Shown here in pieces: positions 2 to 49,109 of a DNA stretch of 64,000 bases. The stretch's first letter is position 1. Each line of letters begins with the position of its first letter. The notes beneath the pieces were generated by a model. The model was not told the origin of the DNA, ran no database searches, and saw only the letters and a list, made by a program, of their open reading frames with translations. Made by a program: the position numbers and the translations under genes. Source of the stretch: Macrostomum lignano (Eukaryota); contig NIVC01002661.1 of assembly GCA_002269645.1 (NCBI GenBank), positions 62,001 to 126,000 of the forward strand. The letters run 5' to 3'.

Positions 2-3000
2 CCACTAAACCTATTCACTCCCAATAGAAGAGCTGCAGCAGTAGGAGACCAGCGAGTTCGATCAGGCAATGAAGAATATGGCAATTTAGTTTGGTACAAT
101 TATTACAGAGGCTACGGATTCCTGCGAGATAGCAATAATAGAGATATATTCTTTCATGTGACTAATACTAATATAGCAACTGATTACGAAATTATGCATT
201 TTCTGCGCCAGAGGGCGACAGTAAAATTTATTCGCACTAACGATACTACTCATAGTAGGAAACAGAGAGCGGTCAATGTTAAAATTTGCTCAAGCGAGGA
301 ACGCAGATTAGCAGAAATTAACAAACAGAAGTCAGCGAGCTTAGCTAGACAGTCAGAGGCATTGACGAAAGAATTAGAGAAACGAAGCGAAGCTGCGGCA
401 GCTCAGAGAAGCGCATTAAACAGCATAGACTTGCGACTTAGTGAAGTAGAAGGAAAGAAAGCTTCAGCGGACGAATCAAAGGTAGTAAAAGAATTATCAG
501 ATCTAAGAACCGAATTGAAGGACTTGCGCCAATGCTTGGTAGGAAAAGTCCAGGAAGAATCAGCGAAAGAAGAACCTGACAAGAGTGCGACGACAGCAGA
601 ACTTAGAGCTGAACTTAGGGAAATGAAGCAAGAATTAAGGAAGTTAGAGACAGCCATCCAGCGAGATGTGGCAGCTGAGAAGAAAGCGACAGAGAAGCAG
701 GAGAAGACCGTAGAAGCAGACATATCTAGCCAATTAGTGAATTCAGGATTATTCCTCGATAGCCAGATTAACGGATTAAGCGAAAAAATATTAGTTGACA
801 CCGGCGCCTCGAATTGCCTAATTGATAGTAAATTATATCAGCGCCTCTATCCGGCAAATCATAGTTTGAAGCCATGCTCAGTGAATATGCGATCCGCCAA
901 TGGCCAGACTTCAAATTTATTAGGCCAAGTAGCATTGCGCGTCAGATTTGGGGACTGCGAGATTACGCACCCATTCTATGTTGCTGAAGGCTTACTAACA
1001 TCATCAATAATAGGCATCGACTTGTTAACTAGGCATAAAATTAAATTAGATATAGCAGGAAAATCCTTAGAATTTAGTGATCGCAGAATTCCGCTTGTAA
1101 CAACGAGTGATGAAACGCGTTGCGTCCTACTGCAAGTAGTCAAGAAAGTATCTATAGCACCGATGAGCGAAATTTATGTCAAGGCTAAATGTAAAGATAT
1201 TCCAGAGACTGCAGAACTCGGCTTCATTTCAGGCCGCAGTCAAATTAGCGAGAAAGATGAGCCATTAGTAGCTAAAGCTATTACTAGATTGGACGAATTC
1301 GGCGAAACTTACGTTAGATTAATGAACCTGACAGAAGAGGCACAGACAATTCATAAGGATGAGGTAGTTGCGCAGTATCAACCGCTGAAGGAAGATGTAG
1401 AACTTTTCGCAATGTCAGAAACTGATTTAGAAGTAGGTGCGCAGAAGCAATCGAAGGCAGCAATTACGGTGCAAGAAGCTGATAGACTTAGGGATCAATT
1501 CCGCTTAAACGAGACCGATTTAAGTGAGGCTCAGAAGAGAAAAGTAATTGAATTATTACATCGTTATCAAAATATAGTTTCAAAGGATCAGTGGGATATC
1601 GGAAAGACCAAGATGGGCGAATTCAAGATTGAGACTACCGATGAAATTCCAGTCAGAATTCCCCTGCGCAAGCAAAGCCCTGAGCAACGAGAATTTGTTA
1701 GCGGGCATGTGCAGCAGCTATTAGAGCACGATTTGATTGAGCCCTCAGAATCTGAGTGGAGTTGCCCTATTGTTCTCGCCCGGAAGAAGTCCGGAGAATT
1801 CAGATTTTGCTGTGACTTCAGACAGTTAAATAATAAGACTAAGAAGGACAGTTTTCCGTTACCGCTAATTCAAGAATCGCTGGAATCCCTGGCAGGCAAC
1901 ATGTACTTTAGCACCCTAGACATGGTCGGCGCTTATTGGTCAGTGAAGGTCAGAGAGACTGACCGCGAGAAATTAGCGTTTCGAACCCATGATGGCCTGT
2001 TCCAGTGGAAAGTTTTGCCTTTCGGAGTCACGAATGGACCCGCTTGCTTTCAGCGCATAATGCAGAAGATCTTAGGCGATTACGCTTATAAGTTTGCCTT
2101 ACTCTACCTAGATGATGTAATTTGCACAGGCAAGAATTTCGAAGAAATGCTAGGAAATTTAGAATTAATTTTCTCTCGATTAGCAGATGCTGGAATGAAA
2201 ATCAAGCCAGAGAAGACCTTTCTGTTTCGGAAAGAAGTCACCTTCCTAGGGCACACCGTCTGCCAGCACGGTATCTATACCAGCAAAGATAAGATAGAAA
2301 AAGTCCAGACATGGCCCCGGCCAGAGAATATCTCTGAGCTGCGCTGATTCTTAGGCTTAGCCGGCTACTATCGCAGATTTATTAAAGACTTTGCGCGAAT
2401 AAGTGAGCCCTTGAATAATTTAACTAGAAAAGATGTCAAGTATAAGTGGGATGACAGTTGCCAGAAGGCATTCGATCTTTTAAAGCAGAAGTTAGTGAGC
2501 GCACCTGTACTGAGCTACCCCAGGTTCGATAGCGACGCGGGACCGTTCATCCTCGATGTCGACGCCTGTGACGTAGCTATAGGTGGAAATTTATTACAAG
2601 AGCAAGATGGGGAAGAAAAAGTAATAGCCTATGCTTCGCATCCGTTGAATGAGCATCAGTTGAATTACTGCACTACGATGAAGGAAATGTTTGCGCTGAT
2701 ATATTTCTTAGAACATTACCGGCCTTATCTGGTCGGCCGTCGTTTCAAGGTCAGGACAGACCACGCGGCCCTCCAATGGCTACGCAAGTGCCACGGTGCA
2801 AAAGGCATGCTAGGCAGATGGAACATGATCCTTGAGCAGTTTGATCAATTTGAAGTAATTTCGAGAATGGAAGAATATGACTTCGCAATTCAGTACCGCC
2901 AAGGGATTGCCCATGGTAACGCAGACGCCCTGAGTCGCAGACCTCAGCGGGATGGTCCCCCGAAACGCTACCATGAGGAATGCCCCACTTGCAGTGCGAC

Positions 3001-4734
3001 GAAGACAGCAACAGTCCACTGCGGTGCAATTAATATCGATACGCCAGCGGGAATTGTAGAACTGCAGGAGAGCCAGCCAGAGTTGCTGCTGCTCAAGCAA
3101 AAGCTCAGACAGGGAGAGCCCTGTCCGCCCAAAATGAATGGGTTGGAATGAGCCGCAGTTATAAGTCATTATTTAGCGATTATGAGCAGCTATTAGTGAA
3201 AAATGACATAATTTACAGGAATTGGATAGATTCCGAAGGCCGAAAATTTGAGCAGACTGTACTGCCGGAAAACCAAGCCCTGGAGCAGCAGTTGTTTAGA
3301 GCTTATCATGACCAGATGGCCCACGGCGGTATTTCGAAGACAAAAGATTTGATTCGACAGAGATTTTGGTGGCCAAACTATTCAACGAACTTAGACAGAT
3401 ATATTAAGACTTGTACTGAGTGCCAGACAAGAAAGAAATACGGGCCAAAGCCACGAGCGCCCTTAGAACCAGAAGTCAGCAGTTACATGGGCGAGAAAGT
3501 ACATATAGATTTCGCCGGTCCGTTTAACGCCACAGCACGGGGGAACAAGTACCTCCTGCTGATGGTTGATCACTTTACGGGCTGGCTAGAGGTAAAAGCG
3601 CTGAGAGATTGTACAGCTGAAAGTACAGCTTGGGCCCTGTACACAGAGTGGATCACTCGGCATGGTGCCCCTGAAGCATTCATATCAGACAGAGGTACAT
3701 CATTTACTGCAGAATTAGTGAAATCGTTAACCGAAAATTTCCGAATAGATTTGCGCCATACTACTAGCTACCATCCGCAGGCAAACGGTCGCTGCGAGCG
3801 CATGGTCAGAGTAGTGAAAGATGGAATCAGATTAGCTCAGGGTGAACTCAGTTTGGCATGGGATGAGGTGCTTCCGCACGCTTTGATGGTTCAGCGAAGC
3901 ACGGTCAGTGAAAGCAATAAATTTAGTCCGTTCGAATTAGTCTATGGTCGAAAGATGCGGCTACCGGTTGATGCTGAGCTTGGATTGCCTTCGCCGGAGC
4001 GCAAGACCCGTGATAAGCATTTACATGATCTGTATAAGAAGTGCATGGAATCGTATAGAATCGCCAGAGAAAAGCAACAAATATCAGTCAGGCGGCAGAA
4101 ATCTAATTATGACACGAAAGTATGCCAGCAGTATTATCAGCCAGGTGACCTGGTCTGGATAGCAAATACGCAGAACTGTTATGATACGAATAGGAAATGG
4201 GTAGGTCCGTACCGAGTGCTAGAAGTAAGAAATAATGGCAAAAATTTAAAAATTGAACCCGGTCCAAAGGTTGACCGAATAGAGCAACCCGTCAGAATTC
4301 ATGACGTAGTGACAGTAGACAGAACAAAGCCATGCTACTTGTCAGAAGAAAAGTTGCGTCAATATCGAGAAGAGGAAGCTGGAAGTGCTAGTGATGACGG
4401 CTCGGAGGAGTCAGAAAGAGTCCAAGTGGAGATTCAGAGACCAGAGAGAATTAGATTTTTGCAACGTGAGAGAGCTCACGAAGCTACTGGAAGTAATATA
4501 GATAGAACAGTGGAAAATACTCAGACAGCGGCCAATGCAAACCAACAGGCGCAGGCGAGTCCTGCGGGGTCTCAGGCCAGGCAGATTCCTGTGCGCACTC
4601 CACCGAATTTAATGCATCTGAGCCCAGTGCACAGTACGCCCCCGCAGCGGGCAGGCACGAATAACGTTAGTTGGATACCGCGGCTGCGGAACCGCGCGGC
4701 GATTAGACCCCCAGAGCGATATGGTTATCATTGA
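2..4734 (+). pseudogene. Gypsy polyprotein (cold-shock domain, coiled coil, PR, RT, RNase H, integrase) interrupted by one in-frame TGA and one frame change
   Basis: Frame 2 is open from base 2 to TGA 2345-2347 (ELR*FLGLAGYYRRF) and continues in the same frame to 3151. The integrase is in another frame, 3148-4734. Confidence 0.9.
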
Positions 4735-6440: not shown

Positions 6441-7625
6441 TGTAGTGTGAGCATCTTTGCGTGTATTTTGTTGTAAATTGACTGCATTAGTTTCTATATT
6501 GTTATTGAATTGTTATTTTGCTTTAGTTAGTCATACGTTTTTTTGTGTACTTTTTCCTTGTTAGTTAGAATCTAAAATTGTAAACAGGTTAGAGTTAGAC
6601 GCCGTTTGTGACTCAGCGGAGGGTTGAGTTTGTCTGCGAACCCCAGCTTTGCGCGGTCAGCCAATCAGAACCGGCCTGGACCCTGGCACGCGGCAAGTTT
6701 CAGTTCTACCCGGCGCCGCGGGCACAGTTCAATTCGGCTTAAGCAAGCGGCCGGCCAGACGACCACCACCCGGCTTGAGGGGGGTTTTGAGGGGTTGTGA
6801 CTCTGGCTATATATGAAAGTGTGTTTTGGCAATCGGATCTCGCTTCTCTCTCCTTTTCCCGGTTTGTCTTGTCCAGTTCCCGGCCGGTGGCCCGATTTTT
6901 CCCTCCTCTTGTTGGTTCGCGCTTTGAGGCGTTTTGATTCTATCACCCCCGGTCCATTTCTTTGTCCCCGCCCAACCGCAGTAGTCTTGTGGCGTAACGT
7001 CTACGGCATTCCTGTCTGAAGTCGTCGCTATCAAGCGCGGTTAGATAGAGACTGTCGGATCTGATCAAGTACGCGGCCTCGACCCGAGGGCCTCAGTGTT
7101 ACACTGAAGGGCAGTGCCGATAGAATTTAGTCGGTACTCCGTTGAACGGTCGATTCGGCAGGGCTCTCGTTTGAGAGTAGGTTCTGGTTTAGGCCAGGGG
7201 TTAGGAGTCTTCTCCGTGGTCCTGTGTTCGGTGCCTTCTTCTTCTTCAGCTGAGATCCGCTTGTCAGTGCGTATATAATCATTATTTATTAACCGTTATT
7301 GTCGTTTTGTCAACTCTAGTTATCTGCGTCGTTTGTCTAAATCTTGTAACTCAGCTAATCAAATTAAACCGTCAATCAAGTTAGTTGTTCTTGAAATAGG
7401 ATTATCACTCTCTAAATCTTTCGGTTTGTGTTCCCTCGTGTTCTTTATTTTCTTGTACTGTACCTGCGGCTATTGGAGAAAGACTGGTAGGACTCGCCGA
7501 CCGGCGATAGGCGATTAGGATTAATAGCTTTAAAATCTTCGAACGCTCCAAGTAGGTTTGTCTAGGGCCTAAATAATTTCTCACCGTGCATGCTATTTAT
7601 CTAATTGCCTATTTATCACACTCCA
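6441..7625 (+). repeat. 3' LTR (~1.18 kb)
   Basis: Starts TGTAGTGTGA after the PPT. TCACACTCCA at 7616-7625 matches its reverse complement at 9/10 positions. CCAAT at ~6661 and TATATA at ~6808. The 5' LTR is outside the window, so the right end may be 7620 instead. Confidence 0.7.
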
Positions 7626-9335
7626 ATCTCCACAAGCTCCAAACTCCACAAGCTCCAAACTCCACAAGCTCCAAACTCCACAAGCTCCAAACTTCAGAAG
7701 CTCCAAACTCCACAAGCTCCAAACTCCACAAGCTCCAATCTCCACAAGCTCCAAACTCCACAAGCTCCAATCTCCACAAGCTCCAAACTCCACAAGCTCC
7801 AATCTTCACAAGCTCCAAACTCCACAAGCTCCAAACTCCACAAGCTCCAATCTCCACAAGCTCCAAACTCCACAAGCTCCAATCTTCACAAGCTCCAATC
7901 TCCACAAGCTCCAAACTCCACAAGCTCCAAACTCCACAAGCTCCAAACTCCACAAGCTCCAAACTCCACAAGCTCCAATCTCCACAAGCTCCAAACTCCA
8001 CAAGCTCCAATCTCCACAAGCTCCAAACTCCACAAGCTCCAATCTTCACAAGCTCCAAACTCCACAAGCTCCAAACTCCACAAGCTCCAAACTCCACAAG
8101 CTCCAAACTCCACAAGCTCCAATCTCCACAAGCTCCAAACTCCACAAGCTCCAAACTCCACAAGCTCCAATCTCCACAAACCCCAAACTCCACAAGCTCC
8201 AATCTCCACAAGCTCCAATCTCCACAAGCTCCAAGCTCCAAACTCCACAAGCTCCAATCTTCACAAGCTCCAATCTCCACAAGCTCCAAACTCCACAAGC
8301 TCCAAACTCCACAAGCTCCAAACTCCACAAGCTCCAATCTTCACAAGCTCCAATCTCCACAAGCTCCAATCTTCACAAGCTCCAATCTCCACAAGCTCCA
8401 AACTCCACAAGCTCCAAACTCCACAAGCTCCAAACTCCACAAGCTCCAATCTCCACAAGCTCCAAACTCCACAAGCTCCAAACTCCACAAGCTCCAAACT
8501 TCAGAAGCTCCAATCTCCACAGCTCCAAACTTCAGAAGCTCCAATCTCCACAAGCTCCAAACTCCACAAGCTCCAATCTCCACAAGCTCCAAACTCCACA
8601 AGCTCCAATCTCCACAAGCTCCAAACTTCACAAGCTCCAATCTCCACAAACCCCAAACTCCACAAGCTCCAATCTCCACAAGCTCCAATCTCCACAAGCT
8701 CCAAGCTCCAAACTCCACAAGCTCCAAACTCCACAAGCTCCAAACTCCACAAGCTCCAAACTCCACAAGCTCCAATCTCCACAAGCTCCAAACTTCACAA
8801 GCTCCAATCTCCACAAGCTCCAAACTCCACAAGCTCCAATCTCCACAAGCTCCAAACTTCACAAGCTCCAATCTCCACAAACCCCAAACTCCACAAGCTC
8901 CAATCTCCACAAGCTCCAATCTCCACAAGCTCCAAGCTCCAAACTCCACAAGCTCCAATCTTCACAAGCTCCAATCTCCACAAGCTCCAAACTCCACAAG
9001 CTCCAAACTCCACAAGCTCCAAACTCCACAAGCTCCAATCTTCACAAGCTCCAATCTCCACAAGCTCCAATCTTCACAAGCTCCAATCTCCACAAGCTCC
9101 AAACTCCACAAGCTCCAAACTCCACAAGCTCCAAACTCCACAAGCTCCAATCTTCACAATCTCCAAACTCCACAAGCTCCAAACTCCACAAGCTCCAATC
9201 TTCACAAGCTCCAATCTCCACAAGCTCCAAACTCTACAAGCTCCAATCTCCACAAGCTCCAAACTCCACAAGCTCCAAACTCTACAAGCTCCAATCTTCA
9301 CAATCTCCAAACTTCATAAAGCTCCAAACTTCGAA
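7621..9335. repeat. 16-bp satellite CTCCAA(A/T)CT(C/T)CACAAG, ~105 units
   Basis: Direct reading; explains the stop-free ORFs in many frames. Confidence 0.97.
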
Positions 9336-12376: not shown

Positions 12377-13429
12377 GTTCTTTATGCCCAAAATGGTTAT
12401 TATAGTAAGGGCGGGAAGGAATTTCCACGTCTCCTTGACAGCCGCGAGCAACCCCCGTTTCTACCCTCCTCCGCTCAAACAGGGGAAGCGAGGGTTGAAA
12501 GAAGAGAGGAAGGCCTGCAGGCTGCGGCCCACATTGCCTTTGCTCTCGCACGCCCAAATGGCGTCAATCGGGGCGAATCTTCTTAATTTACAGCTCTGCT
12601 CGTCCAAGTCTCTCTTAGCTTTCTGTGACTTTCAAGGCAAAGCAGATCGATTTATCTCTCTTGTTTACATGCAGCTAGCTAACTTTCTTTACAGCCAAGT
12701 CTGAACTCTGAAATGCTTCAGTATTTCTTGAGAATGAATCTAATTCAATGGAGAATGTTGAAATTAGCCTTTAGGGCTACAGCCCGGGCCAATAAAGGAA
12801 GAGACGGGTTTTTTGCCTCGCCAAGTATCTTGTATCTATACTACTATAGGAATTAGACGAATGAAATTGCGCCTATGTATATGTAATTAAATCATAGATT
12901 AGAGGATATAAGATGATAGAGATTATAGAGTATTCTCAGTTAGTCATGAAAACATTAAATCAAGTCCTAGACTCCTAGTACTAAGTGGTGGTGTAATAAG
13001 TAAATGAGAAATATATATTATATTCGCAGTTGTGTAGCTAAGGCAGGTAGGTCGTCATGGCTGTCATGACCCCCCTCCCAGACAGCAGACCATTCAAATT
13101 TTGAATCTATTTTAGTAAAAGTAATCTTTAGTTTAGTGTAATGAGAACTACAAAATTATAAAAATCAGCCTATTATGATTTAGCACGCCTGCTACAAACA
13201 CGCTACTAACAGTACAAAATGAAGCGTTTCGCGTAACATATGACTACTTTTTCCATATCAATCTGAGCTTAGCTTGAAGGTTGGGGGGGAGGCAAGGAGA
13301 GCCGCGGTCTATCACGATTACTTTTCACGATTTCATAATTCCCCGCGGCAAAAACATAAACAATGTAGCACCCCCTGGTACTTTTTTTCTGACACTGGCG
13401 CCCACTCTAAATGAAATGGCGCCTACAGT

Positions 13430-14150
13430 GCCGTCTTAGTCAAATGAAATGCCGTCTAGTCAAATGAAATGCCGTCTTGTCAAATGAAATGCCGTCTTAG
13501 TCAAATGAAATGCCGTCTAGTCAAATGAAATGCCGTCTAGTCAAATAAAGTGGCGTCTAGTCAAATGAAATGCCGTCTAGTCAAATAAAATGCCGTCTAG
13601 TCAAATAAAGTGGCGTCTAGTCAAATGAAGTGCCGTCTAGTCAAATGAAGTGCCGTCTAGTCAAATGAAATGCCGTCTAGTCAAATGAAATGCCGTCCTA
13701 GTCACATGAAATGCCGTCTTAGTCACATGAAATGCCGTCTAGTCAAATGAAATGCCGTCTAGTCAAATGAAATGCCGTCTAGTCAAATGAAATGCCGTCT
13801 AGTCAAATAAAGTGGCGTCTAGTCAAATGAAATGCCGTCTAGTCAAATGGAATGCCGTCTAGTCAAATGAAATGCCGTCTTAGTCAAATGAAATGCCGTC
13901 TAGTCAAATAAAGTGGCGTCTAGTCAAATGAAATGCCGTCTAGTCAAATGAAATGCCGTCTAGTCAAATAAAGTGGCGTCTAGTCAAATGAAATGCCGTC
14001 TAGTCAAATGGAATGCCGTCTAGTCAAATGGAATGCCGTCTAGTCAAATGAAATGCCGTCTAGTCAAATGAAATGCCGTCTAGTCAAATGGAATGCCGTC
14101 TAGTCAAATGAAATGCCGTCTAGTCAAATGAAATGCCGTCTTAGTCAAAT
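13430..14150. repeat. 20-bp minisatellite TAGTCAAATGAAATGCCGTC, ~35 units
   Basis: Direct reading. Confidence 0.97.
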
Positions 14151-14384
14151 GAATTTCGAAAGGCAAAATTTCGAATTTCAATAAAATAATTGTAGCGTCT
14201 GTTAATCGGCTGATGGCATACATCAGGCATTAATGTACATGTATTGGGTACAAAAGGCCTAGGATACAGGATGACAGGCCGCGCCATCAGCAGAATCCTT
14301 GGCGACAGCGTAATCAGCAAGCAGTCGACGAACAAAACGCTGCAACACTGAACGCTTGGCCTAATTGCTCGTATAGGGTGCCGG

Positions 14385-16801
14385 TGTTAGAGTTTAGGAT
14401 CTCCGCGTTTTAGGGTCTCCGGCCCGGAGATCACAAACTGAAAATTGTGTCATTTTAAGATCGCCCACACGGAGATCGGAAACCATAACATAAGATAGAG
14501 TTACAGGTCTCCGCCGTGTTAGGATCTCCGCGGTTCTTTTCTATATGAAAATTATAGCTACTTCTATGTACATCGAGATTGGCACCCCAAAGTGTGAGCA
14601 CTCTTGCGTAACTTTCAATAGGCTTTGCACATTTTGGAGATCAGCTTTGTACTCATATTTTATGGGTGGCGGGAAGCGCTGTAAACATTTATATTGGGCA
14701 GATGATAAGAAAGGTTTGTGCTGTGTGATTTTCGTCGATTTCTGCATTTCAAAGCTTGATGGCTTCGCTCAATCAAATATTTTTCTACGTCCTAAACAAT
14801 GAATATACGCAGGTACCAGCCAGATTGGACGCCAAAGATAAGGCCAACTTAAAAAGACGTATTAGAGAAAAGAGCAAGCGTTTCTCCATCCATGACGGAG
14901 CGCTTTACTACAGGGTGACTAATAAGGACGACAGTCAGCGAATGCGGCCTGAAGACCATCGCAGAGTACTTTTAACAGAGGAAGAGGTACGGGATAAGAT
15001 CCGCAGCCTTCACTCGAAAGGAAGTCACGTGGGTGTCAACAGCACAGTGAGCCTTTTTACTGCACGATACTATGCTGACATCCCCGTCACACCGATTGCC
15101 AAGGCAGTGGTCGAGTCTTGTGACAGGTGCGAGCTGGTCAACAAAAAGTTTACCTCAAAGCAGAGGGAGCTTTACCCGGTTGAAGTACCTTCTAATGCAG
15201 AGCGCCTCTTTGGATTCCTGTGCATGGATTGCATCACAATGCCGACCACCACGCCCAACGGTAGGTCTATCAAGTGACAAATTATTCATTAGCAGAAACT
15301 AAAATCAATCAATTACTCTAATGAAATATTGCTCCAATATAATCTAATTTAAGGCTCAAAGAATGTCCTAACAGTGTGCTGCAAATTTACAAAATTTGCC
15401 ATTTTCCGCGCGTTACCAAACATTCAAGCTCAGACGATCGCTGCCGAACTGAGGGACATTTTTGGGCTTTTCGGTTGGCCTAGGGTGATTCTCAGCGATC
15501 AGGGGAGAGAGTTTTGCAACTCTGTTGTAGATGCTCTTCTACAATCCGGTGGGACGGAAAGAAGAGTAACTAGTGCCTACCACCCACAGGTAAGTCTCTT
15601 TTTATCGCATATAAGCTGTTGCTGTTTTCTTGAATTCTACTCACGCACATACATTCGAATCCACAGACAAACGGTCAAACCGAGCGACTCAATCAAACTT
15701 GCATTGACCTCCTGAGGAAGCTCAGTGATTCCGAAGAGCCAACCGACTGGGACACCAAGTTGAATGATGTTCAACTCGCATGCAACAGCAGACGCCATTC
15801 GGTGACAGGCTTTTCGCCGTTCAGGTAGAAAAAGAGAAGATATTAATACCTCATATGTATCATTGAAGTTTATGCCGTAGAATATAAGCAGGCGCCATGC
15901 CATTTTGCAGAGCCGCCTTTGGCTTTGAGCCTTTGCTTGGCGAGCATGCCGCAACGCTAACTGATGTTCCTGAGCCCACTGCAATCAATAGGCGTTCTGT
16001 TGCAGTCAAAGACAAGAAGCGAGCGGCAGTGCGAAAGCTAATCTCCAGCAGGATCAAGCAGGCCCAGGAAATGATGCGAAAGCGTCACACCGTGGGAGCA
16101 GCTGGGGTTCAGGATCTGAAGCGAGGGGACAGAGTTAGGCTTCGCAATCTTCGCAGGGACGATCGGAAGGGTGGTAAGATGCGATACACTTGGAGTCAGC
16201 AAGTCTACATCGTGACCAGGTGTCTTGGTCAAAACGTGTACAGGCTAGGAGGACTAACCAGGTGTGTCAATGGGAAACACCTCAAGAGATGCTTCCTCCA
16301 AGCACCGGCTGAAAGTGCATCACCGGTTTTACCGTCACGTCCGGTAAAACGTCATTACTTTTACGTCATTACTTTAACAGTAAACAGTTTTCCATTTAAA
16401 TACACAGTTGTGCGAGCATATACATATAAAACTAATGCTACGTTAATGATAAAAATGCCTTTCCACTTCTTATACATGTACGAGTTCAATACCATGACCA
16501 TTGGTTTTACACAAATGGGGGGGAGATCGGAAACCGGAGATCCTAAACCAGGACTTTGTTTTTGCGGCCCTGACGGAGAGCTGAAACTGGTTTAGAGTCT
16601 CCTGGGGGGAGATCAGAAACTGGTTTAAGATCTCCGGGTGCGGAGACCTGAAAATGCCCCGGAGACCCTTAAACGGTTTCAGATCTCCTACCCCGGAGAC
16701 CCATAATCGTTAGAAGTCTCCAGGGGAGATCTCCACGGGACCCCGGTCTCCGTCCCGGACACCCTAAACTGACCGGACCCCGGAGATCCTAAACCATAAC
16801 A
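14385..16801 (+). mobile_element. Ginger-type DNA transposon (Gypsy-like integrase with TIRs)
   Basis: 21-bp TIRs TGTTAGAGTTTAGGATCTCCG (14385-14405) and CGGAGATCCTAAACCATAACA (16781-16801), 2 mismatches. GCCGG is duplicated at 14380-14384 and 16802-16806. No RT or LTR. Confidence 0.9.
14759..16595 (+). CDS. Ginger transposase/integrase, 4 exons: 14759-15260, 15354-15589, 15667-15824, 15911-16595
   Basis: All three GT-AG introns are phase-consistent. The joined protein has H/C zinc-finger residues (SHVG...CDRC), D (CMDC), D (ILSDQGREF), E (TNGQTERLNQT) and an RKGGK...W C-terminal motif. The final stop position is less certain. Confidence 0.85.
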
Positions 16802-16850
16802 GCCGGAATCGTCAGCAGCAGCAGAAACTCCTGCACATGCGCATATTATG

Positions 16851-19144
16851 TACTAGCTGGCAGTCTCAGATGGTGTAGCCTACTAGCTGGAGTTGCAGAT
16901 GGTGTAGCCTACTAGCTGGCAGTCTCAGATGGTGTAGCCTACTAGCTGGCAGTCTCAGATGGTGTAGCCTACTAGCTGGCAGTCTCAGATGGTGTAGCCT
17001 ACTAGCTGGCAGTCTCAGATGGTGTAGCCTACTAGCTGGAGTTGCAGATGGTGTAGCCTACTAGCTGGCAGTCTCAGATGGTGTAGCCTACTAGCTGGCA
17101 GTCTCAGATGGTGTAGCCTACTAGCTGGCAGTCACAGATGGTGTAGCCTACTAGCTGGCAGTCTCAGATGGTGTAGCCTACTAGCTGGCAGTCTCAGATG
17201 GTGTAGCCTACTAGCTGGCAGTCTCAGATGGTGTAGCCTACTAGCTGGCAGTCTCAGATGGTGTAGCCTGCTAGCTGGCAGTCTCAGATGGTGTAGCCTA
17301 CTAGCTGGCAGTCTCAGATGGTGTAGCCTACTAGCTGGCAGTCTCAGATGGTGTAGCCTACTAGCTGGCAGTCTCAGATGGTGTAGCCTACTAGCTGGCA
17401 GTCTCAGATGGTGTAGCCTACTAGCTGGCAGTCTCAGATGGTGTAGCCTACTAGCTGGCAGTCTCAGATGGTGTAGCCTACTAGCTGGAGTCTCAGATGG
17501 TGTAGCCTACTAGCTGGCAGTCTCAGATGGTGTAGCCTACTAGCTGGAGTTGCAGGTGGTGTAGCCTACTAGCTGGAGTTGCAGTTAGTGTAGCCTACTA
17601 GCTGGAGTTGCAGGTGGTGTAGCCTACCAGCTGGAGTTGCACATGGTGTAGCCTACTATAGCTAACAGTCTCAGATGGTGTAGCCTACTAGCTGGCAGTC
17701 TCAGATGGTGTAGCCTACTAGCTGGAGTCTCAGATGGTGTAGCCTACTAGCTGGCAGTCTCAGATGGTGTAGCCTACTAGCTGGCAGTCTCAGATGGTGT
17801 AGCCTACTAGCTGGCAGTCTCAGATGGTGTAGCCTACTAGCTGGCAGTCACAGATGGTGTAGCCTACTAGCTGGCAGTCTCAGATGGTGTAGCCTACTAG
17901 CTAGCAGTCTCAGATGGTGTAGCCTACTAGCTAGCAGTCTCAGATGGTGTAGCCTACTATAGCTAGCAGTCTCAGATAGTGTAGCCTACTATAGCTAACA
18001 GTCTCAGATGGTGTAGCCTACTATAGCTAGCAGTCTCAGATGGTGTAGCCTACTAGCTGGCAGTCTCAGATGGTGTAGCCTACTAGCTGGCAGTCTCAGA
18101 TGGTGTAGCCTACTAGCTAGCAGTCTCAGATGGTGTAGCCTACTAGCTGGCAGTCTCAGATGGTGTAGCCTACTAGCTGGCAGTCTCAGATGGTGTAGCC
18201 TACTAGCTGGCAGTCTCAGATGGTATAGCCTACTAGCTGGCAGTCACGGATGGTGTAGCCTACTAGCTGGCAGTCTCAGATGGTGTAGCCTACTAGCTGG
18301 CAGTCTCAGATGGTGTAGCCTACTAGCTGGCAGTCTCAGATGGTGTAGCCTACTAGCTGGCAGTCTCAGATGGTGTAGCCTACTAGCTGGCAGTCTCAGA
18401 TGGTGTAGCCTACTAGCTGGCAGTCTCAGATGGTGTAGCCTACTAGCTGGCAGTCACAGATGGTGTAGCCTACTAGCTGGCAGTCTCAGATGGTGTAGCC
18501 TACTAGCTGGCAGTCTCAGATGGTGTAGCCTACTAGCTAGCAGTCTCAGATGGTGTAGCCTACTAGCTGGCAGTCTCAGATGGTGTAGCCTACTAGCTAG
18601 CAGTCTCAGATGGTGTAGCCTACTATAGCTAGCAGTCTCAGATAGTGTAGCCTACTATAGCTAACAGTCTCAGATGGTGTAGCCTACTATAGCTAGCAGT
18701 CTCAGATGGTGTAGCCTACTAGCTGGCAGTCTCAGATGGTGTAGCCTACTAGCTGGCAGTCTCAGATGGTGTAGCCTACTAGCTAGCAGTCTCAGATGGT
18801 GTAGCCTACTAGCTGGCAGTCTCAGATGGTGTAGCCTACTAGCTGGCAGTCTCAGATGGTGTAGCCTACTAGCTGGCAGTCTCAGATGGTGTAGCCTACT
18901 AGCTGGCAGTCTCAGATGGTGTAGCCTACTAGCTGGCAGTCTCAGATGGTGTAGCCTACTAGCTAGCAGTCTCAGATGGTGTAGCCTACTATAGCTAGCA
19001 GTCTCAGATAGTGTAGCCTACTATAGCTAGCAGTCTCAGATGGTGTAGCCTACTAGCTGGCAGTCTCAGATGGTGTAGCCTACTAGCTGGCAGTCTCAGA
19101 TGGTGTAGCCTACTAGCTGACAGTCTCAGATGGTGTAGCCTACC
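16851..19144. repeat. 30-bp satellite AGCTGGCAGTCTCAGATGGTGTAGCCTACT, ~76 units
   Basis: Direct reading. Confidence 0.97.
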
Positions 19145-29353: not shown

Positions 29354-32300
29354 ATGGATCATTTAAAAAACATGCGGAGCCTCATCACCCGACCTCGCAT
29401 TGCCATGCTGGCCAGTGCAGCTATCGCCTACTTAGCAACAGCCTCCATCTGCCTGGCCCTCCTGCTGGCCCTGGCTGGCTACGCTGCTGCAGGCGGCTGG
29501 CGGTTCCTTCGCGTGGCTGCTCTGACCGCGCCACGTGATGCCCGCGGCCTCGTTGTACTACTCCGCACCCGCTGGATGCTGCGCCAAATGATAGCGCGCC
29601 GGCGTGGCATCGCCCAGCTGTTTGGCGCCACTGCGGCTGCAAACAGCCATCGGGTTTGCTTCCTGTATGAGGATCAGAGCTGGACATTTCGGCAGGTGGA
29701 CGAGTACTCGAATAGGGTGAGCTGCCTTACCTGTCAATTGATTTGTATCAGTCAGTTTAAATATTGTTCCTACCGTGAGTGTAAGAATCCCATTTTAATC
29801 GCCTTAAAATTCGGCCGAAATTATTGCCTTAAAGTCCTTAAAATTTGGCTCAATCACCCCGATAATTGCTATCTACAATTGCCTCGGTAATTACCCTAGA
29901 GAGTCGCCCTGATAATCGCTTTAGAGATTCGCCCTGATAATCGCCCTAGAGAATCGCCCTGATAATCGTCATAAACAGTCGCTCTAGTTTTTCGCTCTGA
30001 TAATCGCCCTGATAATCCTCATAAACAGTCGCTCTAGTTTTTCGCTCTGATAATCGCCCTGATAATCGTCATAAACAGTCGCTCTAGATTTTCGCTCTGA
30101 TAATCGCCCTAGAGAGTCGCTTTGATAATCGCCTTAAAGAGTCGCTTTGATAATCGCCTTAAAGAGTCGCTCTGAGAATCGCCATAGAAAATCGCCCTGA
30201 GAATCGCCATAGAGATTCGCCATGAGAATCACCACAGAGAATTGCCATAGAGAATCACCATAGAGAATCGCCATAGAGAATCACCATAGAGAATCGCCAT
30301 AGAGAATCGCCATAGAGAATCACCATAGAGAATCGCCATAGAGAATCACCATAGAGAATCGCCATAGAGAATCGCCATAGAGAATCGCCATAGAGAATCA
30401 CCATAGAAAATCGCCAAAGAGAATCGCCATAGAGAATCACCATAGAGATTTGCCATAGAGAATCACCATAGAGAATCGCCATAGAGAATCGCCATAGAGA
30501 TTCACCATAGAGAATCGCCATAGAAAATCGCCATAGAGATTCGCCCTTCGAATCACCATAGAGAATCGCCATAGAGAATCACCATAGAGAATCGCCATAG
30601 AGATTTGCCATAGAGAATCACCATAGAGATTCACCATAGAGAATCGCCATAAAAAATCGCCCTGAGAATCGCCATAGAGATTCGCCATAGAGAATCACCA
30701 TAGAGAATCGCCATAGAGATTTGCCATAGAGAATCACCATAGAGATTCACCATAGAGATTCACCATAGAGAATCACCATAGAGAATCACCATAGAGATTC
30801 GCCCTTCGAATCACCATAGAGAATCGCCATAGAGAATCACCATAGAGAATCGCCATAGAGAATCACCATAGAGAATCGCGATAGAGAATCACCATAGAGA
30901 TTCACCATAGAGAATCGCCATAGAAAATCGCCCTGAGAATCGCCATAGAGATTCGCCATAGAGAATCACCATAGAGAATCGCCATAGAGATTTGCCATAG
31001 AGATTTGCCATAGAGAATCACCATAGAGAATCACCATAGAGATTCGCCCTTCGAATCACCATAGAGAATCGCCATAGAGAATCACCATAGAGATTCGCCA
31101 TAGAGAATCGCCATAGAGATTGCCATAGAGAATCACCATAGAGAATCACCATAGAGAATCGCCATAGAGAATCACCATAGAGATTCACCATAGAGAATCG
31201 CCATAGAAAATCGCCCTGAGAATCGCCATAGGGATTCGCCATAGAGAATCACCATAGAGAATCGCCATAGAGATTTGCCATAGAGATTTGCCATAGAGAA
31301 TCACCATAGAGATTCACCATAGAGAATCACCATAGAGAATCACCATAGAGATTCGCCCTTCGAATCACCATAGAGAATCGCCATAGAAAATCGCCCTGAG
31401 AATCGCCATAGAGATTCGCCCTTCGAATCACCATAGAGAATCACCATAGAGAATCGCCATAGAGAATCACCATAGAGATTCACCATAGAGAATCGCCATA
31501 GAAAATCGCCCTGAGAATCGCCATAGAGAATCACCATAGAGAATCGCCATAGAGATTTGCCATAGAGATTTGCCATAGAGAATCACCATAGGGATTCACC
31601 ATAGAGATTCACCATAGAGAATCACCATAGAGAATCGCCCTAAACAATTGCGCAGGTGGCCAACCTTCTAATGGAATCCGGCCACCGTCCCGGCCAAGTG
31701 GTGGCCATCCTGGCCGAGTCGCGGCCCCAGTTCGCCTGCCTGTGGCTGGGTGCAGCTAAAGCCGGGGTAGTCAGCGCCCTGATCAACTTCAATCTGCGCG
31801 CCCAGTCTCTGCTGCACTGCCTGCACGCTGCCGACGCGACCAGCCTGATATTCGGCGCTGAGCTGGCGTCCGCGGTGCTGGAGGTGGCGCCAAGCCTGCC
31901 AGCGGGCCTGAGGCTCTACTGCCTGGGCGGTGGCAACGGGGGCCTGTCCAATGCGGCCGATTTGGATGCCAACCTGCTGCGCGCGTCCACTCTGCAACCG
32001 GCCTATCCGGTTAAACAGGGGCCCAATGCTAAGGATCGACTGTTCTATATCTACACCTCGGGTTTGTGGCTTGGTGTTGCTGTCCTTGTTTACTTTGTTA
32101 ATCATTTAGAACAGCTGTTTACCTGGGATCACCGGTATTTTATGATTGAGAACAGCTGTTTACCTGGGATCGCCGGTATTTTATGATTAAGAACAGCTGT
32201 TTACCTGGGATCGCCGGTATTTTATGATTAAGAACAGCTGTTTACCTGGGATCTCCGATTGTTTATGATTGAGAACAGGTGTTTACCTGGGATCAGCGGT

Positions 32301-35300
32301 ATTTTATGATTGAGAACAGCTGTTTACCTGGGATCTCCGATTGTTTATGATTGAGAACAGGTGTTTACCTGGAATCACCGGTATTTTATGATTGAGAACA
32401 GCTGTTTACCTGGGATCTCCGATTGTTTATGATTAACAACAGCTGTTTACCTGGAATCACCGGTATTTTATGATTGAGAACAGCTGTTTACCTGGGATCG
32501 CCGGTATTTTATGATTGAGAACAGCTGTTTACCTGGAATCACCGGTATTTTATGATTGAGAACAGCTGTTTACCTGGGATCTCCGATTGTTTATGATTGA
32601 GAACAGGTGTTTACCTAGAATCACCGGTATTTTATGATTGAGAACAGCTGTTTACCTGGGATCACCGGTATTTTATGATTAGGAACAGCTGTTTACCTGG
32701 AATCACCGGTATTTTATGATTAAGAACAGGTGTTTACCTGAGATCACCGGTATTTTATGATTAAGTACAGCTGTTTACCTGGGATCACCGGTATTTTATG
32801 ATTAAGAACAGCTGTTTACCTGGGATCTCCGATTGTTTATGATTGAGAACAGGTGTTTACCTGGAATCACCGGTATTTTATGATTGAGAACAGCTGTTTA
32901 CCTGGGATCACCGGTATTTTATTATTAAGAATAGCTGTTTACCTGGGATCACCGGTATTTTATGATTGAGAACAGGTATTTACCTTGGATGACCAGTTGT
33001 TTATAATTGAGAACAGGTGTTTATCTGGGATCACCGGAATTTTATGATCGAGAACAGGTATTTACATTGGATGACCAGTTGTTTATGATTGAGAACAGCT
33101 GTTTACCTGGAATCACCGGTATTTTATGATTAAGAACAGGTGTTTACCTGAGATCACCGGTATTTTATGATTGAGAACAGGTGTTTACCTGGGATCACCG
33201 GTATTTTATGATTGAGAACAGCTGTTTACCTGGGATCTCCGATTGTTTATGATTGAGAACAGGTGTTTACCTGGAATCACCGGTATTTTATGATTGAGAA
33301 CAGCTGTTTACCTGGGATCACCGGTATTTTATTATTAAGAATAGCTGTTTACCTGGGATCACCGGTATTTTATGATCGAGAACAGGTATTTACATTGGAT
33401 GACCAGTTGTTTATGATTGAGAACAGATGTTTACCTGGGATCACCGGAATTTTATGTTTTAGAACAGGTGTTTACCTGGCATCACGAGTATTTTATGATT
33501 AACAACAGGTGTTTACCTTGAATCACCGGTAGTTTTTTATTTAGAACAGGTGTTTACCTGGGATCACCGGTATCGTATGATTGAGTACAGGTGTCTACCG
33601 CGTGGGAGCACCGGTATTTTATGATTGAGAACAGGTACTTACCTGGGAGCACCGGTATACATGACTGATATCATATATTTGTAATTTTTGATGCTTTATA
33701 TTTTCTTAAAAATTCTATTACTCTATATTTAGGCACCACCGGCATGCCAAAGGCGGCGGTGATATCGCACCTCAGATTCGCCATGATGTCCAACACAATC
33801 GGCTTGTTCTTCGGCTTGGGCCTGGGCGACATTCTGTACGACTGTCTGCCACTGTACCACACTGCTGGCGGCATTCTGGGCATCGGACAGGTGAGTCGCA
33901 GGGCTTTTTCATTACTCAGGTCCTGTCGCTATTTCTGATCCCATTCCCTAAATTCTGATCCCATTCTGCGATTCCGATCCCATTCCCAAGTTCTGATCCC
34001 ATTTCCGAATTCTGATCCCATTCCTAAATCCTGATCCCATTCCTTGAATTCTGATCCCATTCCTTGAATTCTGATCCCATTCCCTGAATTCTGACCCCAT
34101 TCCCGAATTCTGATCCCATCCCGAATTCTGACCCCATTCCCGAATTCTGACCCCATTCCCGAATTCTGATCCCACTCCCAAATCCCATCCTAAGTTGGAA
34201 TCCCACCCGCCTCCCAGGCGTTCCTCCGCGGCGTGACGGTGGTGATCAAACGGAAATTCTCAGCCTCGGCCTTCTGGGACGACTGCGCCCGCTACCAGTG
34301 CACGGCGGCGCAGTACATCGGCGAGATCTGCCGCTACTTGCTGGCCCAGCCTGCCAAGCAGTCGGACAGGCGGCACCGGGTTCGCGTCATGTTCGGCAAC
34401 GGGCTCCGGCCGCAAATCTGGCGCGAATTTCAGCAGCGATTCGGCGTCGATAAAATGGGCGAATTCTACGGCGCCACGGAGTCCAACTGCAACATGGTGA
34501 ACATTGACAACACGGTTGGCGCTGTGGGATTCCTCAGCCAGATCGCGCCCAGCGTCTACCCGCTCCGGCTGGTCCGGGTCGATCCCGACACTGGCGAGCC
34601 GCTCAGGAACCCGCGGATCAGCTGTGCGTGCCTGCTGGTCCCGGCGAGCCCGGCGAACTCATCGGCAGTGTCGTGCCCGGCGACGCAATCCGCGGCATCG
34701 ATGGCTACGTGTGCAAGCAGGCCACGGAGAAGAAGATGCTGAGAAATGTGCTGCGCCACGGCGATTGCTATTTCTCTACTGGGGACGTGCTGGTCATGGA
34801 CGAGCTGGGCTATATGTACTTTAGGGACAGGACTGGGGATACGTTCCGGTGGAAGGGCGAGAATGTGTCCACCTCTGAGGCGAGTTGCCGCTTTGCTTAC
34901 TGCTTCAGTAGGGGGCGGATTGATACAGACAGTCTAGAGTGAGATGAGATTAAGAGGCTAGAGTGAGATTAAGAGGCTGGAGTGAGATGAGATTAAGAGT
35001 CTAGAGTGAGATTAAGCGGCTAAAGTGAGATTAAGAGGCTGGAGTGAGATTATGAAGCTAGAGTGGGATTAAGAGGCTGGAGTGAGGTAAGAGGCTGGAG
35101 TGAGATTATGATGATAGAGTGAAATGAAAAAAGAGGCTAGAGTGAGATTAAGAGGCTAGTGTGAGATTAAGAGGCTAGTGTGAGATGAGAATAAGTCTGG
35201 AGTGAGATAAGATTACGAGGCCAGATTGAAATGAGAATAAGTCTGGAGTGAGATAAGATTAAGAGGCTAGATTGAGATGAGATTAAGAGGCTGGATTAAG

Positions 35301-38647: not shown

Positions 38648-40480
38648 TCATTGCCCTCCACTCCACTCGGACAGCAGCTCCCGGAATCGCGCGATCTCGT
38701 TGGCGAACTTTTCCGGCTGTTCTTCCGCTTGCCGATAGAATGCCGCCGACGTTCGCAGCGCCTCGATGAGCGGCGTCGCCGGCAGCCAATCGCCGCAGGC
38801 CTCGGCCGCCTTCTCCACGCTGATTGGTCCGCTGGTCACGGTGGGGTAGAGCTGGCTGGCCGACTCGCTGAATTCGATTCTCGGCGCCTCGGGCAGCTCC
38901 ATGGCTTCGGCCAGCCGGCCAACGAACGCCTCCGCTGTCCAGGTCTCCTGGTAGGCGAAGTTGAAGATTTCCTTGACTGAGCCGAGCGGTCTGGCCAGGC
39001 GTCTGTAGCGATCGACAAGGCCGACCAAGAAGTCGGCCACGTCGCCGACGTAGGCCAGCGACATTCGGGCGTCGCGGCTGAAGCTCGGCAGGCGCACGCG
39101 GCCTGCAGCCGCTCCGTGAACTAAGTACCAGAACCTGTAGCTGGTGTCCCTGGGCCCGAACGTGTCCGGGATGCGCACGATGGTGTAGTCGTAGAGAGCC
39201 CCATTGTGCTCTGCGGCCAGCAGGTCGACAATGAACTCCGCTGTGAGCTTCAGCTCCGCGTAGCGACGTCCGGCGCGCAGACGGTTGCGTAGCGCCGCGT
39301 CGGACGGGAAGGCGCCGTCAGATTCGCGCGACCTGCCGGCGTGTCGCTTGTCCGACACGTCGTAGACGGAGTCGGTGCTCAGGTACACGTAGTACTGGAA
39401 CCGGCCGGTCAGCAGCTGGACGCTTTGCATCACTGCTACGTCAGCGTAGCCGGAGAGGTCGATGACGGCCAGGAACGGCCGCGCCTCCAGCTGCGAGAGG
39501 CTGGCGCAGTCCGTGAGGTCAAAGTTGCGGTCGCAGGTCAGCACCCGGCTGTGGTGGCTGCTGTGCCACTGCCAGTAGGTGTTGTTCCTGTGCAGGGTAG
39601 TCACATTGTAGCCGCGCGAGGCCAGACGCTCCACAGTGTGGCTGCCGATAAAGCCGTTGCCTCCGAGCACGAGGATGTCTCTGGCGCGGCGGGAGGGCGG
39701 AGTTGGTGCGCAGATTGTGACTTTGAGCACTGCAACGATTGAATCAAGGCAAAATTTGATCCGTCAAGGAAGGGACGCAATGATGCAGTCCAGCTCCCAG
39801 GAATAGGTACACAATGATGCGGTCCAGCTCTCAGGAATAGGGACACAATGATGCGGTCCAGCTCTCAGGAATAGGGACACAATGATGCGGTCCAGCTCTC
39901 AGGAATAGGGACACAATGATGCGGTCCAGCTCTCAGGAATAGGGACACAATGATGCGGTCCAGCTCTCAGGAATAGGGACACAATGATGCGGTCCAGCTC
40001 TCAGGAATAGGGACACAATGATGCGGTCCAGCTCTCAGGAACAGGGACACAATGATGCGGTCCAGCTCTCAGGAACAGGGACACAATGATGCGGTCCAGC
40101 TCTCAGGAACAGGGACACAATGATGCGGTCCAGCTCTCAGGAACAGGGACAAAATGATGCGGTACAGCTCTCAGGAATAGGGACACAATGATGCGGTCCA
40201 GCTGTCAGTAATAGGGACACAATGATGCGGTCCAGCTCTCAGGAACAGGGACACAATGATGCGGTCCAGCTGTCAGTAATACAGACACAATGGTGCAAAC
40301 CAGCTCTACCTAGCCCGCAGACAAAATCCTCAACCCCTGAGTTTACCTGTTCCCCTCGGAGTGGTCCCTCGGTGCATCGGGATCCGCGTAGCGACTGTTC
40401 AGGTGGGCCAGGCTCGGGGAGGCGCAGCAGGCGGTGACCACCAGCAGCACAGTCAGCAGCAGCCATCGTTGATGCGGCAT
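38648..40480 (-). CDS. Atypical SDR / NAD(P)-dependent epimerase-dehydratase-like protein; main exon ~39729-38648, probable signal-peptide exon 40480-40347
   Basis: Rossmann motif ILVLGGNGFIG, YVYLSTDSVY, YxxxK (YAELK), IVRIPDTFGP. Upstream exon reads MPHQRWLLLTVLLVVTACCA with a GTAAAC donor, but the phases differ by 1 nt. Confidence 0.8.
39776..40290. repeat. 34-bp minisatellite in the SDR intron, ~15 units
   Basis: Unit GGACACAATGATGCGGTCCAGCTCTCAGGAATAG. Confidence 0.95.
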
Positions 40481-40909
40481 CTGCGCGCCTGTTCTTCGTT
40501 TCTGCACTGCTTCCGATGCACGCGGAACCTTTTACCGTGGGGTGTTTTATCCTTCCTCTAGGCTGGGAGCATCGAATGCTTTTCTTCCCCTAATCGGTGC
40601 AGTGCACATTCTTTCTTCCCTGCTGATTCATGCATAAATTTCTCCCTCAAGTTCGCACAGTTTCGCATCGGAAAAATCCCTATACACACTGTACATTCTC
40701 TGAGGCTGTACTCTGCGCTTGAGGGGAAGCTAACAGCACGTTGTTTCGAATTAAAAGCAACAGAATATTGCTACAGTTTTCCCTGCAAAGTAAAGGTTTG
40801 CATCAGGTTTGTTCAACAAATTTCAAGGCTTGATGCAGGGGTCCGCAAAATTCTTAACTTCTAAGGGCCAGATTAATATGAGCTAAGATCTAGCTCGTTG
40901 CCGCGGGCT

Positions 40910-48092: not shown

Positions 48093-49109
48093 ATGAGCTC
48101 ACCGAAGCTATGGAACGCTGTTCTCATCGTGTTCGGCCTGCTGACAGGTGTCCGGTGCGCGCAGCAGACCGCAGTATATCAGCAGGCCGATGCCCAGTGC
48201 GCACCGGAAGATTCACCGATAGTCCGAGCTCGAATCCTTGCAACGGTGACTACACCTTCGGCGACGAGTTGCGCGATTATGGCTTCGCAAACGGCGCAGA
48301 CTGGCGCTCTGGTGGCGCAGTTCCGCCGGGGCAGCCGGCAGTGCACCATATTCCAGTTTCAATCCATCTGCCAGCACCTGATGCCTGGCAAAACCTCCGG
48401 CTGCTACGTTTACTTTCGCTTTCCGATTGACCATGGGTTGCTGAACGCCAAGCTCAGCAATATGTGGGTGGGCGACCGCGCCGGCAAGCTGGAGAACCTG
48501 GTTTGCCAAGCCCATGAGGACACCAATCGGCTCTACCCGTTCAACATCCAGTGGAGCAGCGAGGGCGCCTATTTCGACGGCACAACGGCCTATGCGGTGC
48601 TGAACAAGTCGAGCCTGAACTTTGCCAGCGGACTCACCTGGCTGATGAAGCTAAAGAGGCAGCCTCAGGTTCAGCCAATCCTGGAATTCGCCGACTGCAA
48701 CGATATAAACGGCGTCACCGGTTACGGCATTCACCTGTGGGAATATGCCGCCCCTGGTCAGCTGTACATCAGGGCCAACCGAATCACGGGAAGCCTGCTG
48801 CCGTTTGTCTACTCAGCAACTGATGCTCTGCCGCTGGGCCAAAACGACTGGCTGAACATCGCCTTCACGGCCAACGGGAGCAACTTTGATGTCTTCGTGG
48901 CTGATTCCTTCCTGCCAAGGCACACCCTCTCTCTTTATAGCGACAACAACCCCAATCCCATAACCAACTCGAACGCCTGCCTATACCTCGGAATGCGAGT
49001 GGAGCCAGCCAACAATCCCAGGTTCAAAGGCACCATGAAGGCGCTGGCCTTCGCTGGGACGAGCATGTCGGAGGCGGAGATACGCGAGTTCTTCTCCATC
49101 TTTGAATGA
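48093..49109 (+). CDS. Secreted protein, 338 aa: signal peptide, PAN/apple-like domain, LamG/concanavalin-A-like domain (intronless)
   Basis: Hydrophobic N-terminus ending VRCA; SATSCAIM...RQCTIF pattern; LamG-like GLTWLMKL, WLNIAFT, LYLG...FKGTMKALAF. Confidence 0.75.
   Translation: MSSPKLWNAVLIVFGLLTGVRCAQQTAVYQQADAQCAPEDSPIVRARILATVTTPSATSCAIMASQTAQTGALVAQFRRGSRQCTIFQFQSICQHLMPGKTSGCYVYFRFPIDHGLLNAKLSNMWVGDRAGKLENLVCQAHEDTNRLYPFNIQWSSEGAYFDGTTAYAVLNKSSLNFASGLTWLMKLKRQPQVQPILEFADCNDINGVTGYGIHLWEYAAPGQLYIRANRITGSLLPFVYSATDALPLGQNDWLNIAFTANGSNFDVFVADSFLPRHTLSLYSDNNPNPITNSNACLYLGMRVEPANNPRFKGTMKALAFAGTSMSEAEIREFFSIFE

Follow-up and report, generated by a model that had tools for sequence, protein, structure and literature searches.

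A probable compact Ginger1-type DNA transposon with a five-base target duplication in the flatworm Macrostomum lignano

What kind of element occupies positions 14385–16801 of a 64,000-nt stretch of the Macrostomum lignano genome (assembly GCA_002269645.1, contig NIVC01002661.1, positions 62,001 to 126,000 of the forward strand; hereafter the window, whose own numbering is used throughout), and does the 5-bp duplication at its borders set it apart from its family? A sequence-only reading of the locus had proposed an intact and recently active Ginger transposon, whose Gypsy-like integrase is restored by the splicing of three introns. Among DNA transposons, Ginger1 elements stand nearest to the integrases of long terminal repeat (LTR) retrotransposons and retroviruses, and M. 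lignano serves as a regeneration model. It is highly probable that a cut-and-paste transposon of Ginger1 type, present here in one copy, fills the region and belongs to a compact subgroup of 2.0–2.4 kb that encodes a bare four-domain integrase and lacks an OTU/Ulp1 domain.

The element is 2417 bp long, lies on the forward strand and is delimited by its terminal inverted repeats (TIRs), its target-site duplication (TSD) and an integrase-like gene; the borders, the TGT...ACA ends and the GCCGG duplication described earlier were all recovered at the same coordinates. The termini read TGTTA...TAACA. The left end, TGTTAGAGTTTAGGATCTCCG (14385–14405), matches the reverse complement of the right end, TGTTATGGTTTAGGATCTCCG (16781–16801), at 19 of 21 positions, and once gaps are allowed the match lengthens to 46/55 nt (14385–14430 on the forward strand, 46 nt; 16747–16801 on the reverse strand, 55 nt). 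The number of chance matches expected for the terminal 21-mer in the window is zero (0 in 100 shuffles), and around the gene the sole TG..CA pair reaching at least 15/20 is formed by the element's own ends. The direct repeats GCCGG occupy 14380–14384 and 16802–16806; since the flanking 6-mers differ (TGCCGG on the left, GCCGGA on the right), the repeat is exactly 5 bp long.

Both ends are also rich in a short repeated motif. Counted with at most 3 mismatches in both orientations, the 14-nt core GTTTAGGATCTCCG is found 16 times in the 64 kb, where 4.2 occurrences would be expected, and 15 of the 16 fall within the element ends, with five copies in a left subterminal array (14392–14530) and ten in a right one (16521–16794), each array containing both orientations. 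These copies are presumed to be binding sites of the transposase. In addition, the terminal 21-mer is repeated in inverted orientation at 14470–14490 with 2 mismatches, so that the first 106 bp hold both end types and resemble a miniature element; no duplication of its own was seen around 14385–14490.

Within the element, the listing of open reading frames (ORFs) contains fragments only. Removal of 15261–15353, 15590–15666 and 15825–15910, as proposed in the sequence-only reading, yields a single frame of 526 codons that opens with the ATG at 14759 and closes with the TAG at 16593–16595. All exons and introns, placed by the splicing model and by alignment, are on the forward strand. Exon 1 (14759–15260) encodes a YPYY-like N-terminal region, an HHCC zinc finger and the catalytic residue D157; exon 2 (15354–15589) runs from D216 (SDQGREF) through SAYHPQ; exon 3 (15667–15824) runs from TNGQTE (E252) through SPF; and the conserved part of exon 4 (15911–16298) encodes a linker helix and an SH3-like C-terminal domain whose last residues are VNGKHLKRCF. 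Intron 1 (93 nt, GTAGGT..AG, phase 1, GC content 0.26) contains in-frame stops, intron 2 (77 nt, GTAAGT..AG, GC 0.38) is in phase 0, and intron 3 (86 nt, GTAGAA..AG, GC 0.36) is in phase 2, within codon R299. The range of 0.26–0.38 in the introns contrasts with 0.48–0.54 in the exons. When the protein is aligned to 11 homologues, the three junctions are free of gaps and intron 2 interrupts the invariant motif SAYHPQ–TNGQ. Intron 1 receives independent support, since contig L086 holds a relative (68% identity) with an intron at the same place. The three intervals resemble spliceosomal GT–AG introns, and the alignment supports the predicted junctions.

The predicted protein has the organization of an integrase. 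A Pfam search of the 526-residue ORF detected rve above the cut-off (4.7e-10) and Integrase_H2C2 weakly, below the cut-off, and nothing beyond these two; an OTU/Ulp1 protease domain was not found, and the element has no space for one. The zinc-finger residues H85, H90, C121 and C124 and the triad D157, D216 and E252, spaced as D,D35E, occupy invariant or near-invariant columns among the 11 homologues, in agreement with the zinc finger and full DDE triad noticed earlier. Upstream of the zinc finger a YPYY-type region is present, with three of its four positions kept (V-P...F...Y). Residues 1–428 can be aligned over their whole length with Ginger1 transposases, and no stop or frameshift occurs in them over the four exons. 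The same residues are folded in an AlphaFold model built on the homologue alignment, in the order N-terminal extension, zinc-finger domain, RNase-H-fold core, long helix and SH3-like barrel. In the PDB, this model comes closest to full-length PFV integrase (8e-18), followed by that of Ty3 (1e-15), with ~395 aligned columns that include all four domains.

The published Ginger1 and Ginger2 alignments were used as references for classification (Bao et al., 2010; PMC2836005 supplements). In hidden Markov model (HMM) comparisons the protein scored 198 bits for Ginger1 and 112 bits for Ginger2. BLAST alignments to the Ginger1 references (29–36% identity across ~300 aa) began at residue 4 and therefore include the YPYY region, which Ginger2 proteins lack. 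A first neighbor-joining (NJ) tree of 233 columns grouped the protein with Ginger1 (bootstrap 82) and set Ginger2 apart as a separate 100% clade. In a second NJ tree, the window protein, P0050, P0059 and the transposase from contig L088 formed a 100% clade, which was joined to Ginger1 against Ginger2 and Gypsy with a bootstrap of 81. Profile scores, BLAST, both trees and the structural resemblance to the integrases of PFV and Ty3 support the Ginger identity put forward by the sequence-only reading, and they specify it as Ginger1-type. Membership in Ginger2/TDD was rejected on account of the separate clade, the lower HMM score and the GC-rich, CCGG-containing target. Mean core identity is 35% to Ginger1, 28% to Ginger2 and ~30% to Gypsy integrases; Ginger1 references share 49% among themselves, indicating that the window protein belongs to an outlying lineage. 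An exhaustive search revealed closer relatives at 44–68% identity that had been missed by a word-based search.

The most notable result is that the compact protease-less subgroup has apparently young copies in two organisms. Besides the M. lignano family, it contains a sister family found on Logan contigs L088–L090 (SRR26493805-7; protein P0055). Identity of the window protein to P0055, P0050 and P0059 is 44–48%, and to the sister family 44%. The sister element on L088 (48–2046) measures 1999 bp, with ends TGTTATG..GTGTAACA, and its transposase of ~448 aa is encoded with one intron and without a protease domain. Its copies on L088–L090 are 99.95% identical and have different flanks, so the sister family looks currently active and minimal. 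Both families share the signatures TCKF(T/S)KF and W-S-x-x-V-Y, the terminus TGTTAT, and a short TIR combined with subterminal repeats. As the sister family also lacks OTU/Ulp1 and also has W-S-x-x-V-Y, these features are traits of the subgroup and not decay of the window copy. The two differ in their introns: the single intron of the sister family lies after TNGQ, 12 nt from the second of the three introns in the window. Around HPQTNGQ, three members of the subgroup have introns at three different codons, and only intron 1 is common, with the L086 relative.

This relative (L086 5275–6375; JGI 3300040801) is 68% identical in the catalytic core, has another 5' exon and altered zinc-finger histidines, and adjoins a KIF9-like ORF. 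An upstream search for a TIR or a CCGG–TGT junction gave neither. With its different 5' exon, damaged zinc finger and lack of an upstream TIR, the L086 copy may be decayed or co-opted.

Other copies in M. lignano were met in the protein databases only as exon-1 fragments within two gene models. The top match, P0001 (M. lignano UniRef), covers 105 exon-1 residues (98% identity) and belongs to a gene model with EGF domains; the window lacks those EGF exons, so P0001 represents another locus. An exhaustive HMMER search added a second exon-1 fragment, P0061, at 93% identity in a different gene model, which encodes a KRMSEFVGKR-repeat, neuropeptide-precursor-like protein. Near-identical fragments in two unrelated gene models mean that other copies exist, and judged from these sequences the family is present at no fewer than three loci, a few percent apart. 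Both fragments begin at VPARLD, which in exon 1 is immediately preceded by an AG (window 14811–14813); either intronic copies were exonised via a cryptic acceptor or the same gene-prediction error was made twice. Within the window, a TIR pattern search and BLAST of the element with its flanks gave self-matches only, and no empty paralogous site was found there. A literature search for Ginger in Macrostomum or Platyhelminthes returned nothing relevant. The recent activity suggested earlier gains indirect support from the perfect TSD and from the 93–98% identical fragments at other loci; the window copy may be autonomous, and its family may be active at present.

The suggestion that the coding sequence is intact holds for residues 1–428 and not for the 98 codons that follow, which are unconserved and predicted to be disordered. 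This AT-rich tail (16299–16595, forward strand, including the TAG) enters the right repeats, and its coding status is uncertain. It has no homologues in the alignment, and its predicted local distance difference test (pLDDT) values in the AlphaFold model are <35. The frame stays open in only 0.2% of shuffles, and the remaining five frames carry 3–8 stops. The open frame may reflect a tail peculiar to this lineage, the loss of a stop codon or an additional, fourth intron starting from GTAAAA at 16344; from this GTAAAA, several AG acceptors would yield stops within 0–12 codons. A 14-nt tandem duplication, ACGTCATTACTTT(T/A), is located inside the tail at 16349–16376.

Several points weigh against the reading as a Ginger1-type cut-and-paste transposon. 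The tree backbone is weak (supports 28–61), and the lineage may lie inside or beside Ginger1. The first YPYY aromatic is replaced by V, and the canonical GPY/F motif is missing, with W393 kept and GPY changed to SQQVY (W-SQQ-VY), although the SH3-like fold is still predicted. The sister family has its stop 3 codons after HLKK, whereas here the frame continues for 98 codons into the right repeats. The 5-bp TSD comes from one insertion (n=1), one full copy having been examined, and we know of no Ginger element that has been experimentally shown to transpose. Some of these points would suit a dead or non-autonomous copy, that is, an integrase-only remnant with a lost stop codon that is at best mobilised in trans: the lost GPY/F and the read-through, together with the 2 mismatches in the 21-nt TIR and the absence of OTU/Ulp1, which nearly all described Ginger1 elements carry. 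Nevertheless, such a remnant is unlikely in view of the 428 conserved codons without stop or frameshift, the complete set of catalytic and zinc residues and the perfect TSD, and the sister family combines the same lack of a protease and the same W-S-x-x-V-Y with nearly identical copies. Highly improbable is a reading without any DNA transposon, in which the locus holds a GIN1-like gene domesticated by the host or a fragment of a Gypsy LTR-retrotransposon integrase. The integrase homology, the Gypsy pol in the same window (158–4734) and the occurrence of introns in GIN1-like genes are compatible with it, but TIRs, subterminal repeats and a TSD are present, near-identical fragments exist at other loci, and the location is a spacer between two minisatellites. 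The resident Gypsy integrase is only 27% identical to the transposase, and protease, reverse transcriptase and RNase H are all absent from 14385–16801. An LTR retrotransposon of the Gypsy type was rejected for this absence and for ends that are inverted and not direct repeats. Intron positions shared with GIN1-like genes were likewise rejected, the Megalops GIN1-like gene and a Halichondria relative having their introns elsewhere.

For the Ginger1-type transposon that is favoured here, the length of the TSD has to be weighed separately. The sequence-only reading had given 4 bp as usual for Ginger, correctly: among 112 Hydra elements the 4-bp TSD of Ginger1 is CCGG in 75% and CCGT/ACGG in 24%, and metazoan Ginger2 elements also have 4 bp, with 5 bp found only in TDD-4 and TDD-5 (PMC2836005). 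The 5-bp length reported for the window copy stands exactly, but it does not extend to its relatives. In all ten complete insertions examined in the latter (L001, L002, L008, L042, L046, L050, L051, L069, L073 and the sister L088) the TGT...ACA ends are flush with a 4-bp CCGG, and a second left junction of the sister family (L090) also abuts CCGG, so that GCCGG is truly anomalous. It amounts to the canonical CCGG extended by a single base and is asymmetric for a symmetric intasome. The better supported explanation, and a probable one, is that strand transfer at a canonical CCGG site was one position off. In GingerRoot, an integrase-type TIR family, the TSD is one base over the norm in 5 of 77 insertions and two over in one (PMC6839031); at ~6–8% of insertions, such events are not rare. 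A rule of 5 bp for the whole family, with an intasome geometry changed within Ginger1 and GCCGG as its normal product, is a doubtful alternative, although not a negligible one. Symmetric TGT...ACA ends leave no room here for a flush repeat of 4 bp, the sole flush duplication being 5 bp; TSD length does vary between integrase lineages, as TDD-4 and TDD-5 differ from metazoan Ginger2 (PMC2836005); and the family is divergent, with at most 48% identity to anything with known ends. Against this rule stand the single insertion, the form of GCCGG as the expected off-by-one product, the frequency of such products in GingerRoot, and the 4-bp duplications of the sister family, which is 44% identical and shares the TGTTAT terminus, of the nine other relatives' insertions and of the Hydra elements. 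Other junction artefacts make up the remainder, and only there is a place kept for a 4-bp TSD at this locus, which demands an asymmetric end (TGT...ACAG or GTGT...ACA) and was otherwise rejected. Contig L046 also bears, at 1348–2956, an element of 1.6 kb that is unrelated and has a TIR of 19/20 (TGTGAATGAGG...) and a 4-bp GATC duplication.

A mechanism can be proposed for the Ginger1-type transposon on these grounds. The host would transcribe the gene and splice out the three short GT–AG introns. The transposase would then bind the 14-nt motif that forms the TIR and is repeated five times at the left end and ten times at the right end, synapse both ends and expose the CA-3' OH termini of TGTTA...TAACA. 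These ends would be joined at sites staggered about a CCGG target, and repair of the gaps would produce the flanking duplication; in the window copy the stagger would have been 5 bp (GCCGG).

If the M. lignano family were active, autonomous, integrase-only and governed by a 5-bp rule, and formed a protease-less Ginger1 sublineage with the 2.0-kb sister, which taken together is improbable, it would supply a cut-and-paste element of the retroviral-integrase type that is, for the first time, accessible to experiment, and one whose native host is a flatworm ready for transgenesis. If, on the other hand, the duplication of 5 bp is an isolated event and the copy inactive, the locus amounts to routine transposon annotation; its importance rises if the family is active or 5 bp is the rule. 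The subgroup of 2.0–2.4 kb, having four integrase domains and short ends, would offer the simplest system for excision plus integration by an integrase-type enzyme and for the question of what fixes TSD length and CCGG targeting. Minos-based transgenesis in M. lignano gave no transposase-mediated integration (PMC5730564), and therefore a native, possibly active element is of practical interest. Its use as a transgenesis tool, raised in the sequence-only reading, is speculation.

The element is situated in a short unique spacer between two minisatellites, one with a 20-bp unit (13429–14153) and the other with a 30-bp unit (16851–19143). Minisatellites are very dense in the window (27 TRF rows scoring at least 200, with units of 13–46 bp and up to 120 copies), and further arrays occur, for example, at 7621–9330, 29894–31639, 32104–33658 and 58646–59211. 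The M. lignano genome is known to be repeat-rich, and this density fits. The Gypsy-type pol at 158–4734 (forward strand) extends over three ORFs and comprises protease and reverse transcriptase (158–2347), RNase H (2411–3151) and H2C2 plus rve integrase (3148–4734). An NAD-dependent epimerase/dehydratase gene on the reverse strand (39269–40528) is 96–100% identical to M. lignano UniRef A0A1I8H6I5, and the intron between its two matched exons contains a 34-bp minisatellite (39771–40307). P0001 and P0047 are both M. lignano UniRef entries (96–100% identity), which agrees with an origin of the window in M. lignano or a very near relative. ORFs on the forward strand at 48093–49109 and 60975–61742 have weak Laminin_G_3 (concanavalin-like) matches, and one of three successive ~300-aa ORFs at 54126–57323 (forward strand) has a weak Ig-like match; these are possibly exons of host genes. 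Scans of the window for tRNA and Rfam families gave no matches.

Among known systems, Ginger1 is the closest, as represented by Ginger1-1_BF, Ginger1-5_HM and Ginger1-6_HM (Bao, Kapitonov and Jurka, 2010; PMC2836005). Common features are a single Gypsy-integrase-like gene, HHCC, D,D35E, inverted repeats with TGTNR at their termini and 0–4 GT–AG introns; the region upstream of the zinc finger is YPYY-like, and the target contains CCGG. The TIRs of Ginger1 are ~40–270 bp with TGTNR termini, a range that includes the 46/55 nt and the TGTTA at both ends of the window element, and Ginger1-1_BF is also without a protease domain. The window element, at 2417 bp, is smaller than the published 2.6–7 kb; it has no OTU/Ulp1, W-S-x-x-V-Y in place of GPY/F, V for the first YPYY aromatic, a short TIR core (21 nt) accompanied by numerous copies of the subterminal motif, a duplication of 5 instead of 4 bp in this copy, and a host phylum absent from the 2010 list. 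Ginger2/TDD elements are likewise integrase-type TIR transposons with TGTNR ends, and TDD-4 and TDD-5 share the 5-bp length; unlike the window element, Ginger2 proteins are without the YPYY and GPY/F regions and the target is AT-rich (RTATAY). GingerRoot elements have TA...TA termini, a 6-bp TSD and no YPYY, HHCC or GPY around the DDE core (PMC6839031), and membership in this family was rejected on the TGT...ACA termini, 5-bp TSD and HHCC of the window copy. The PFV and Ty3 integrases (intasomes 3L2Q and 7Q5B) are the best structural matches and have the same four domains. They differ in acting on reverse-transcribed viral or retrotransposon DNA ends, share only ~20% identity, and a donor-excision step is not known for either. 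By analogy, their intasomes probably show how the Ginger1-type transposase would bind its ends and carry out strand transfer.

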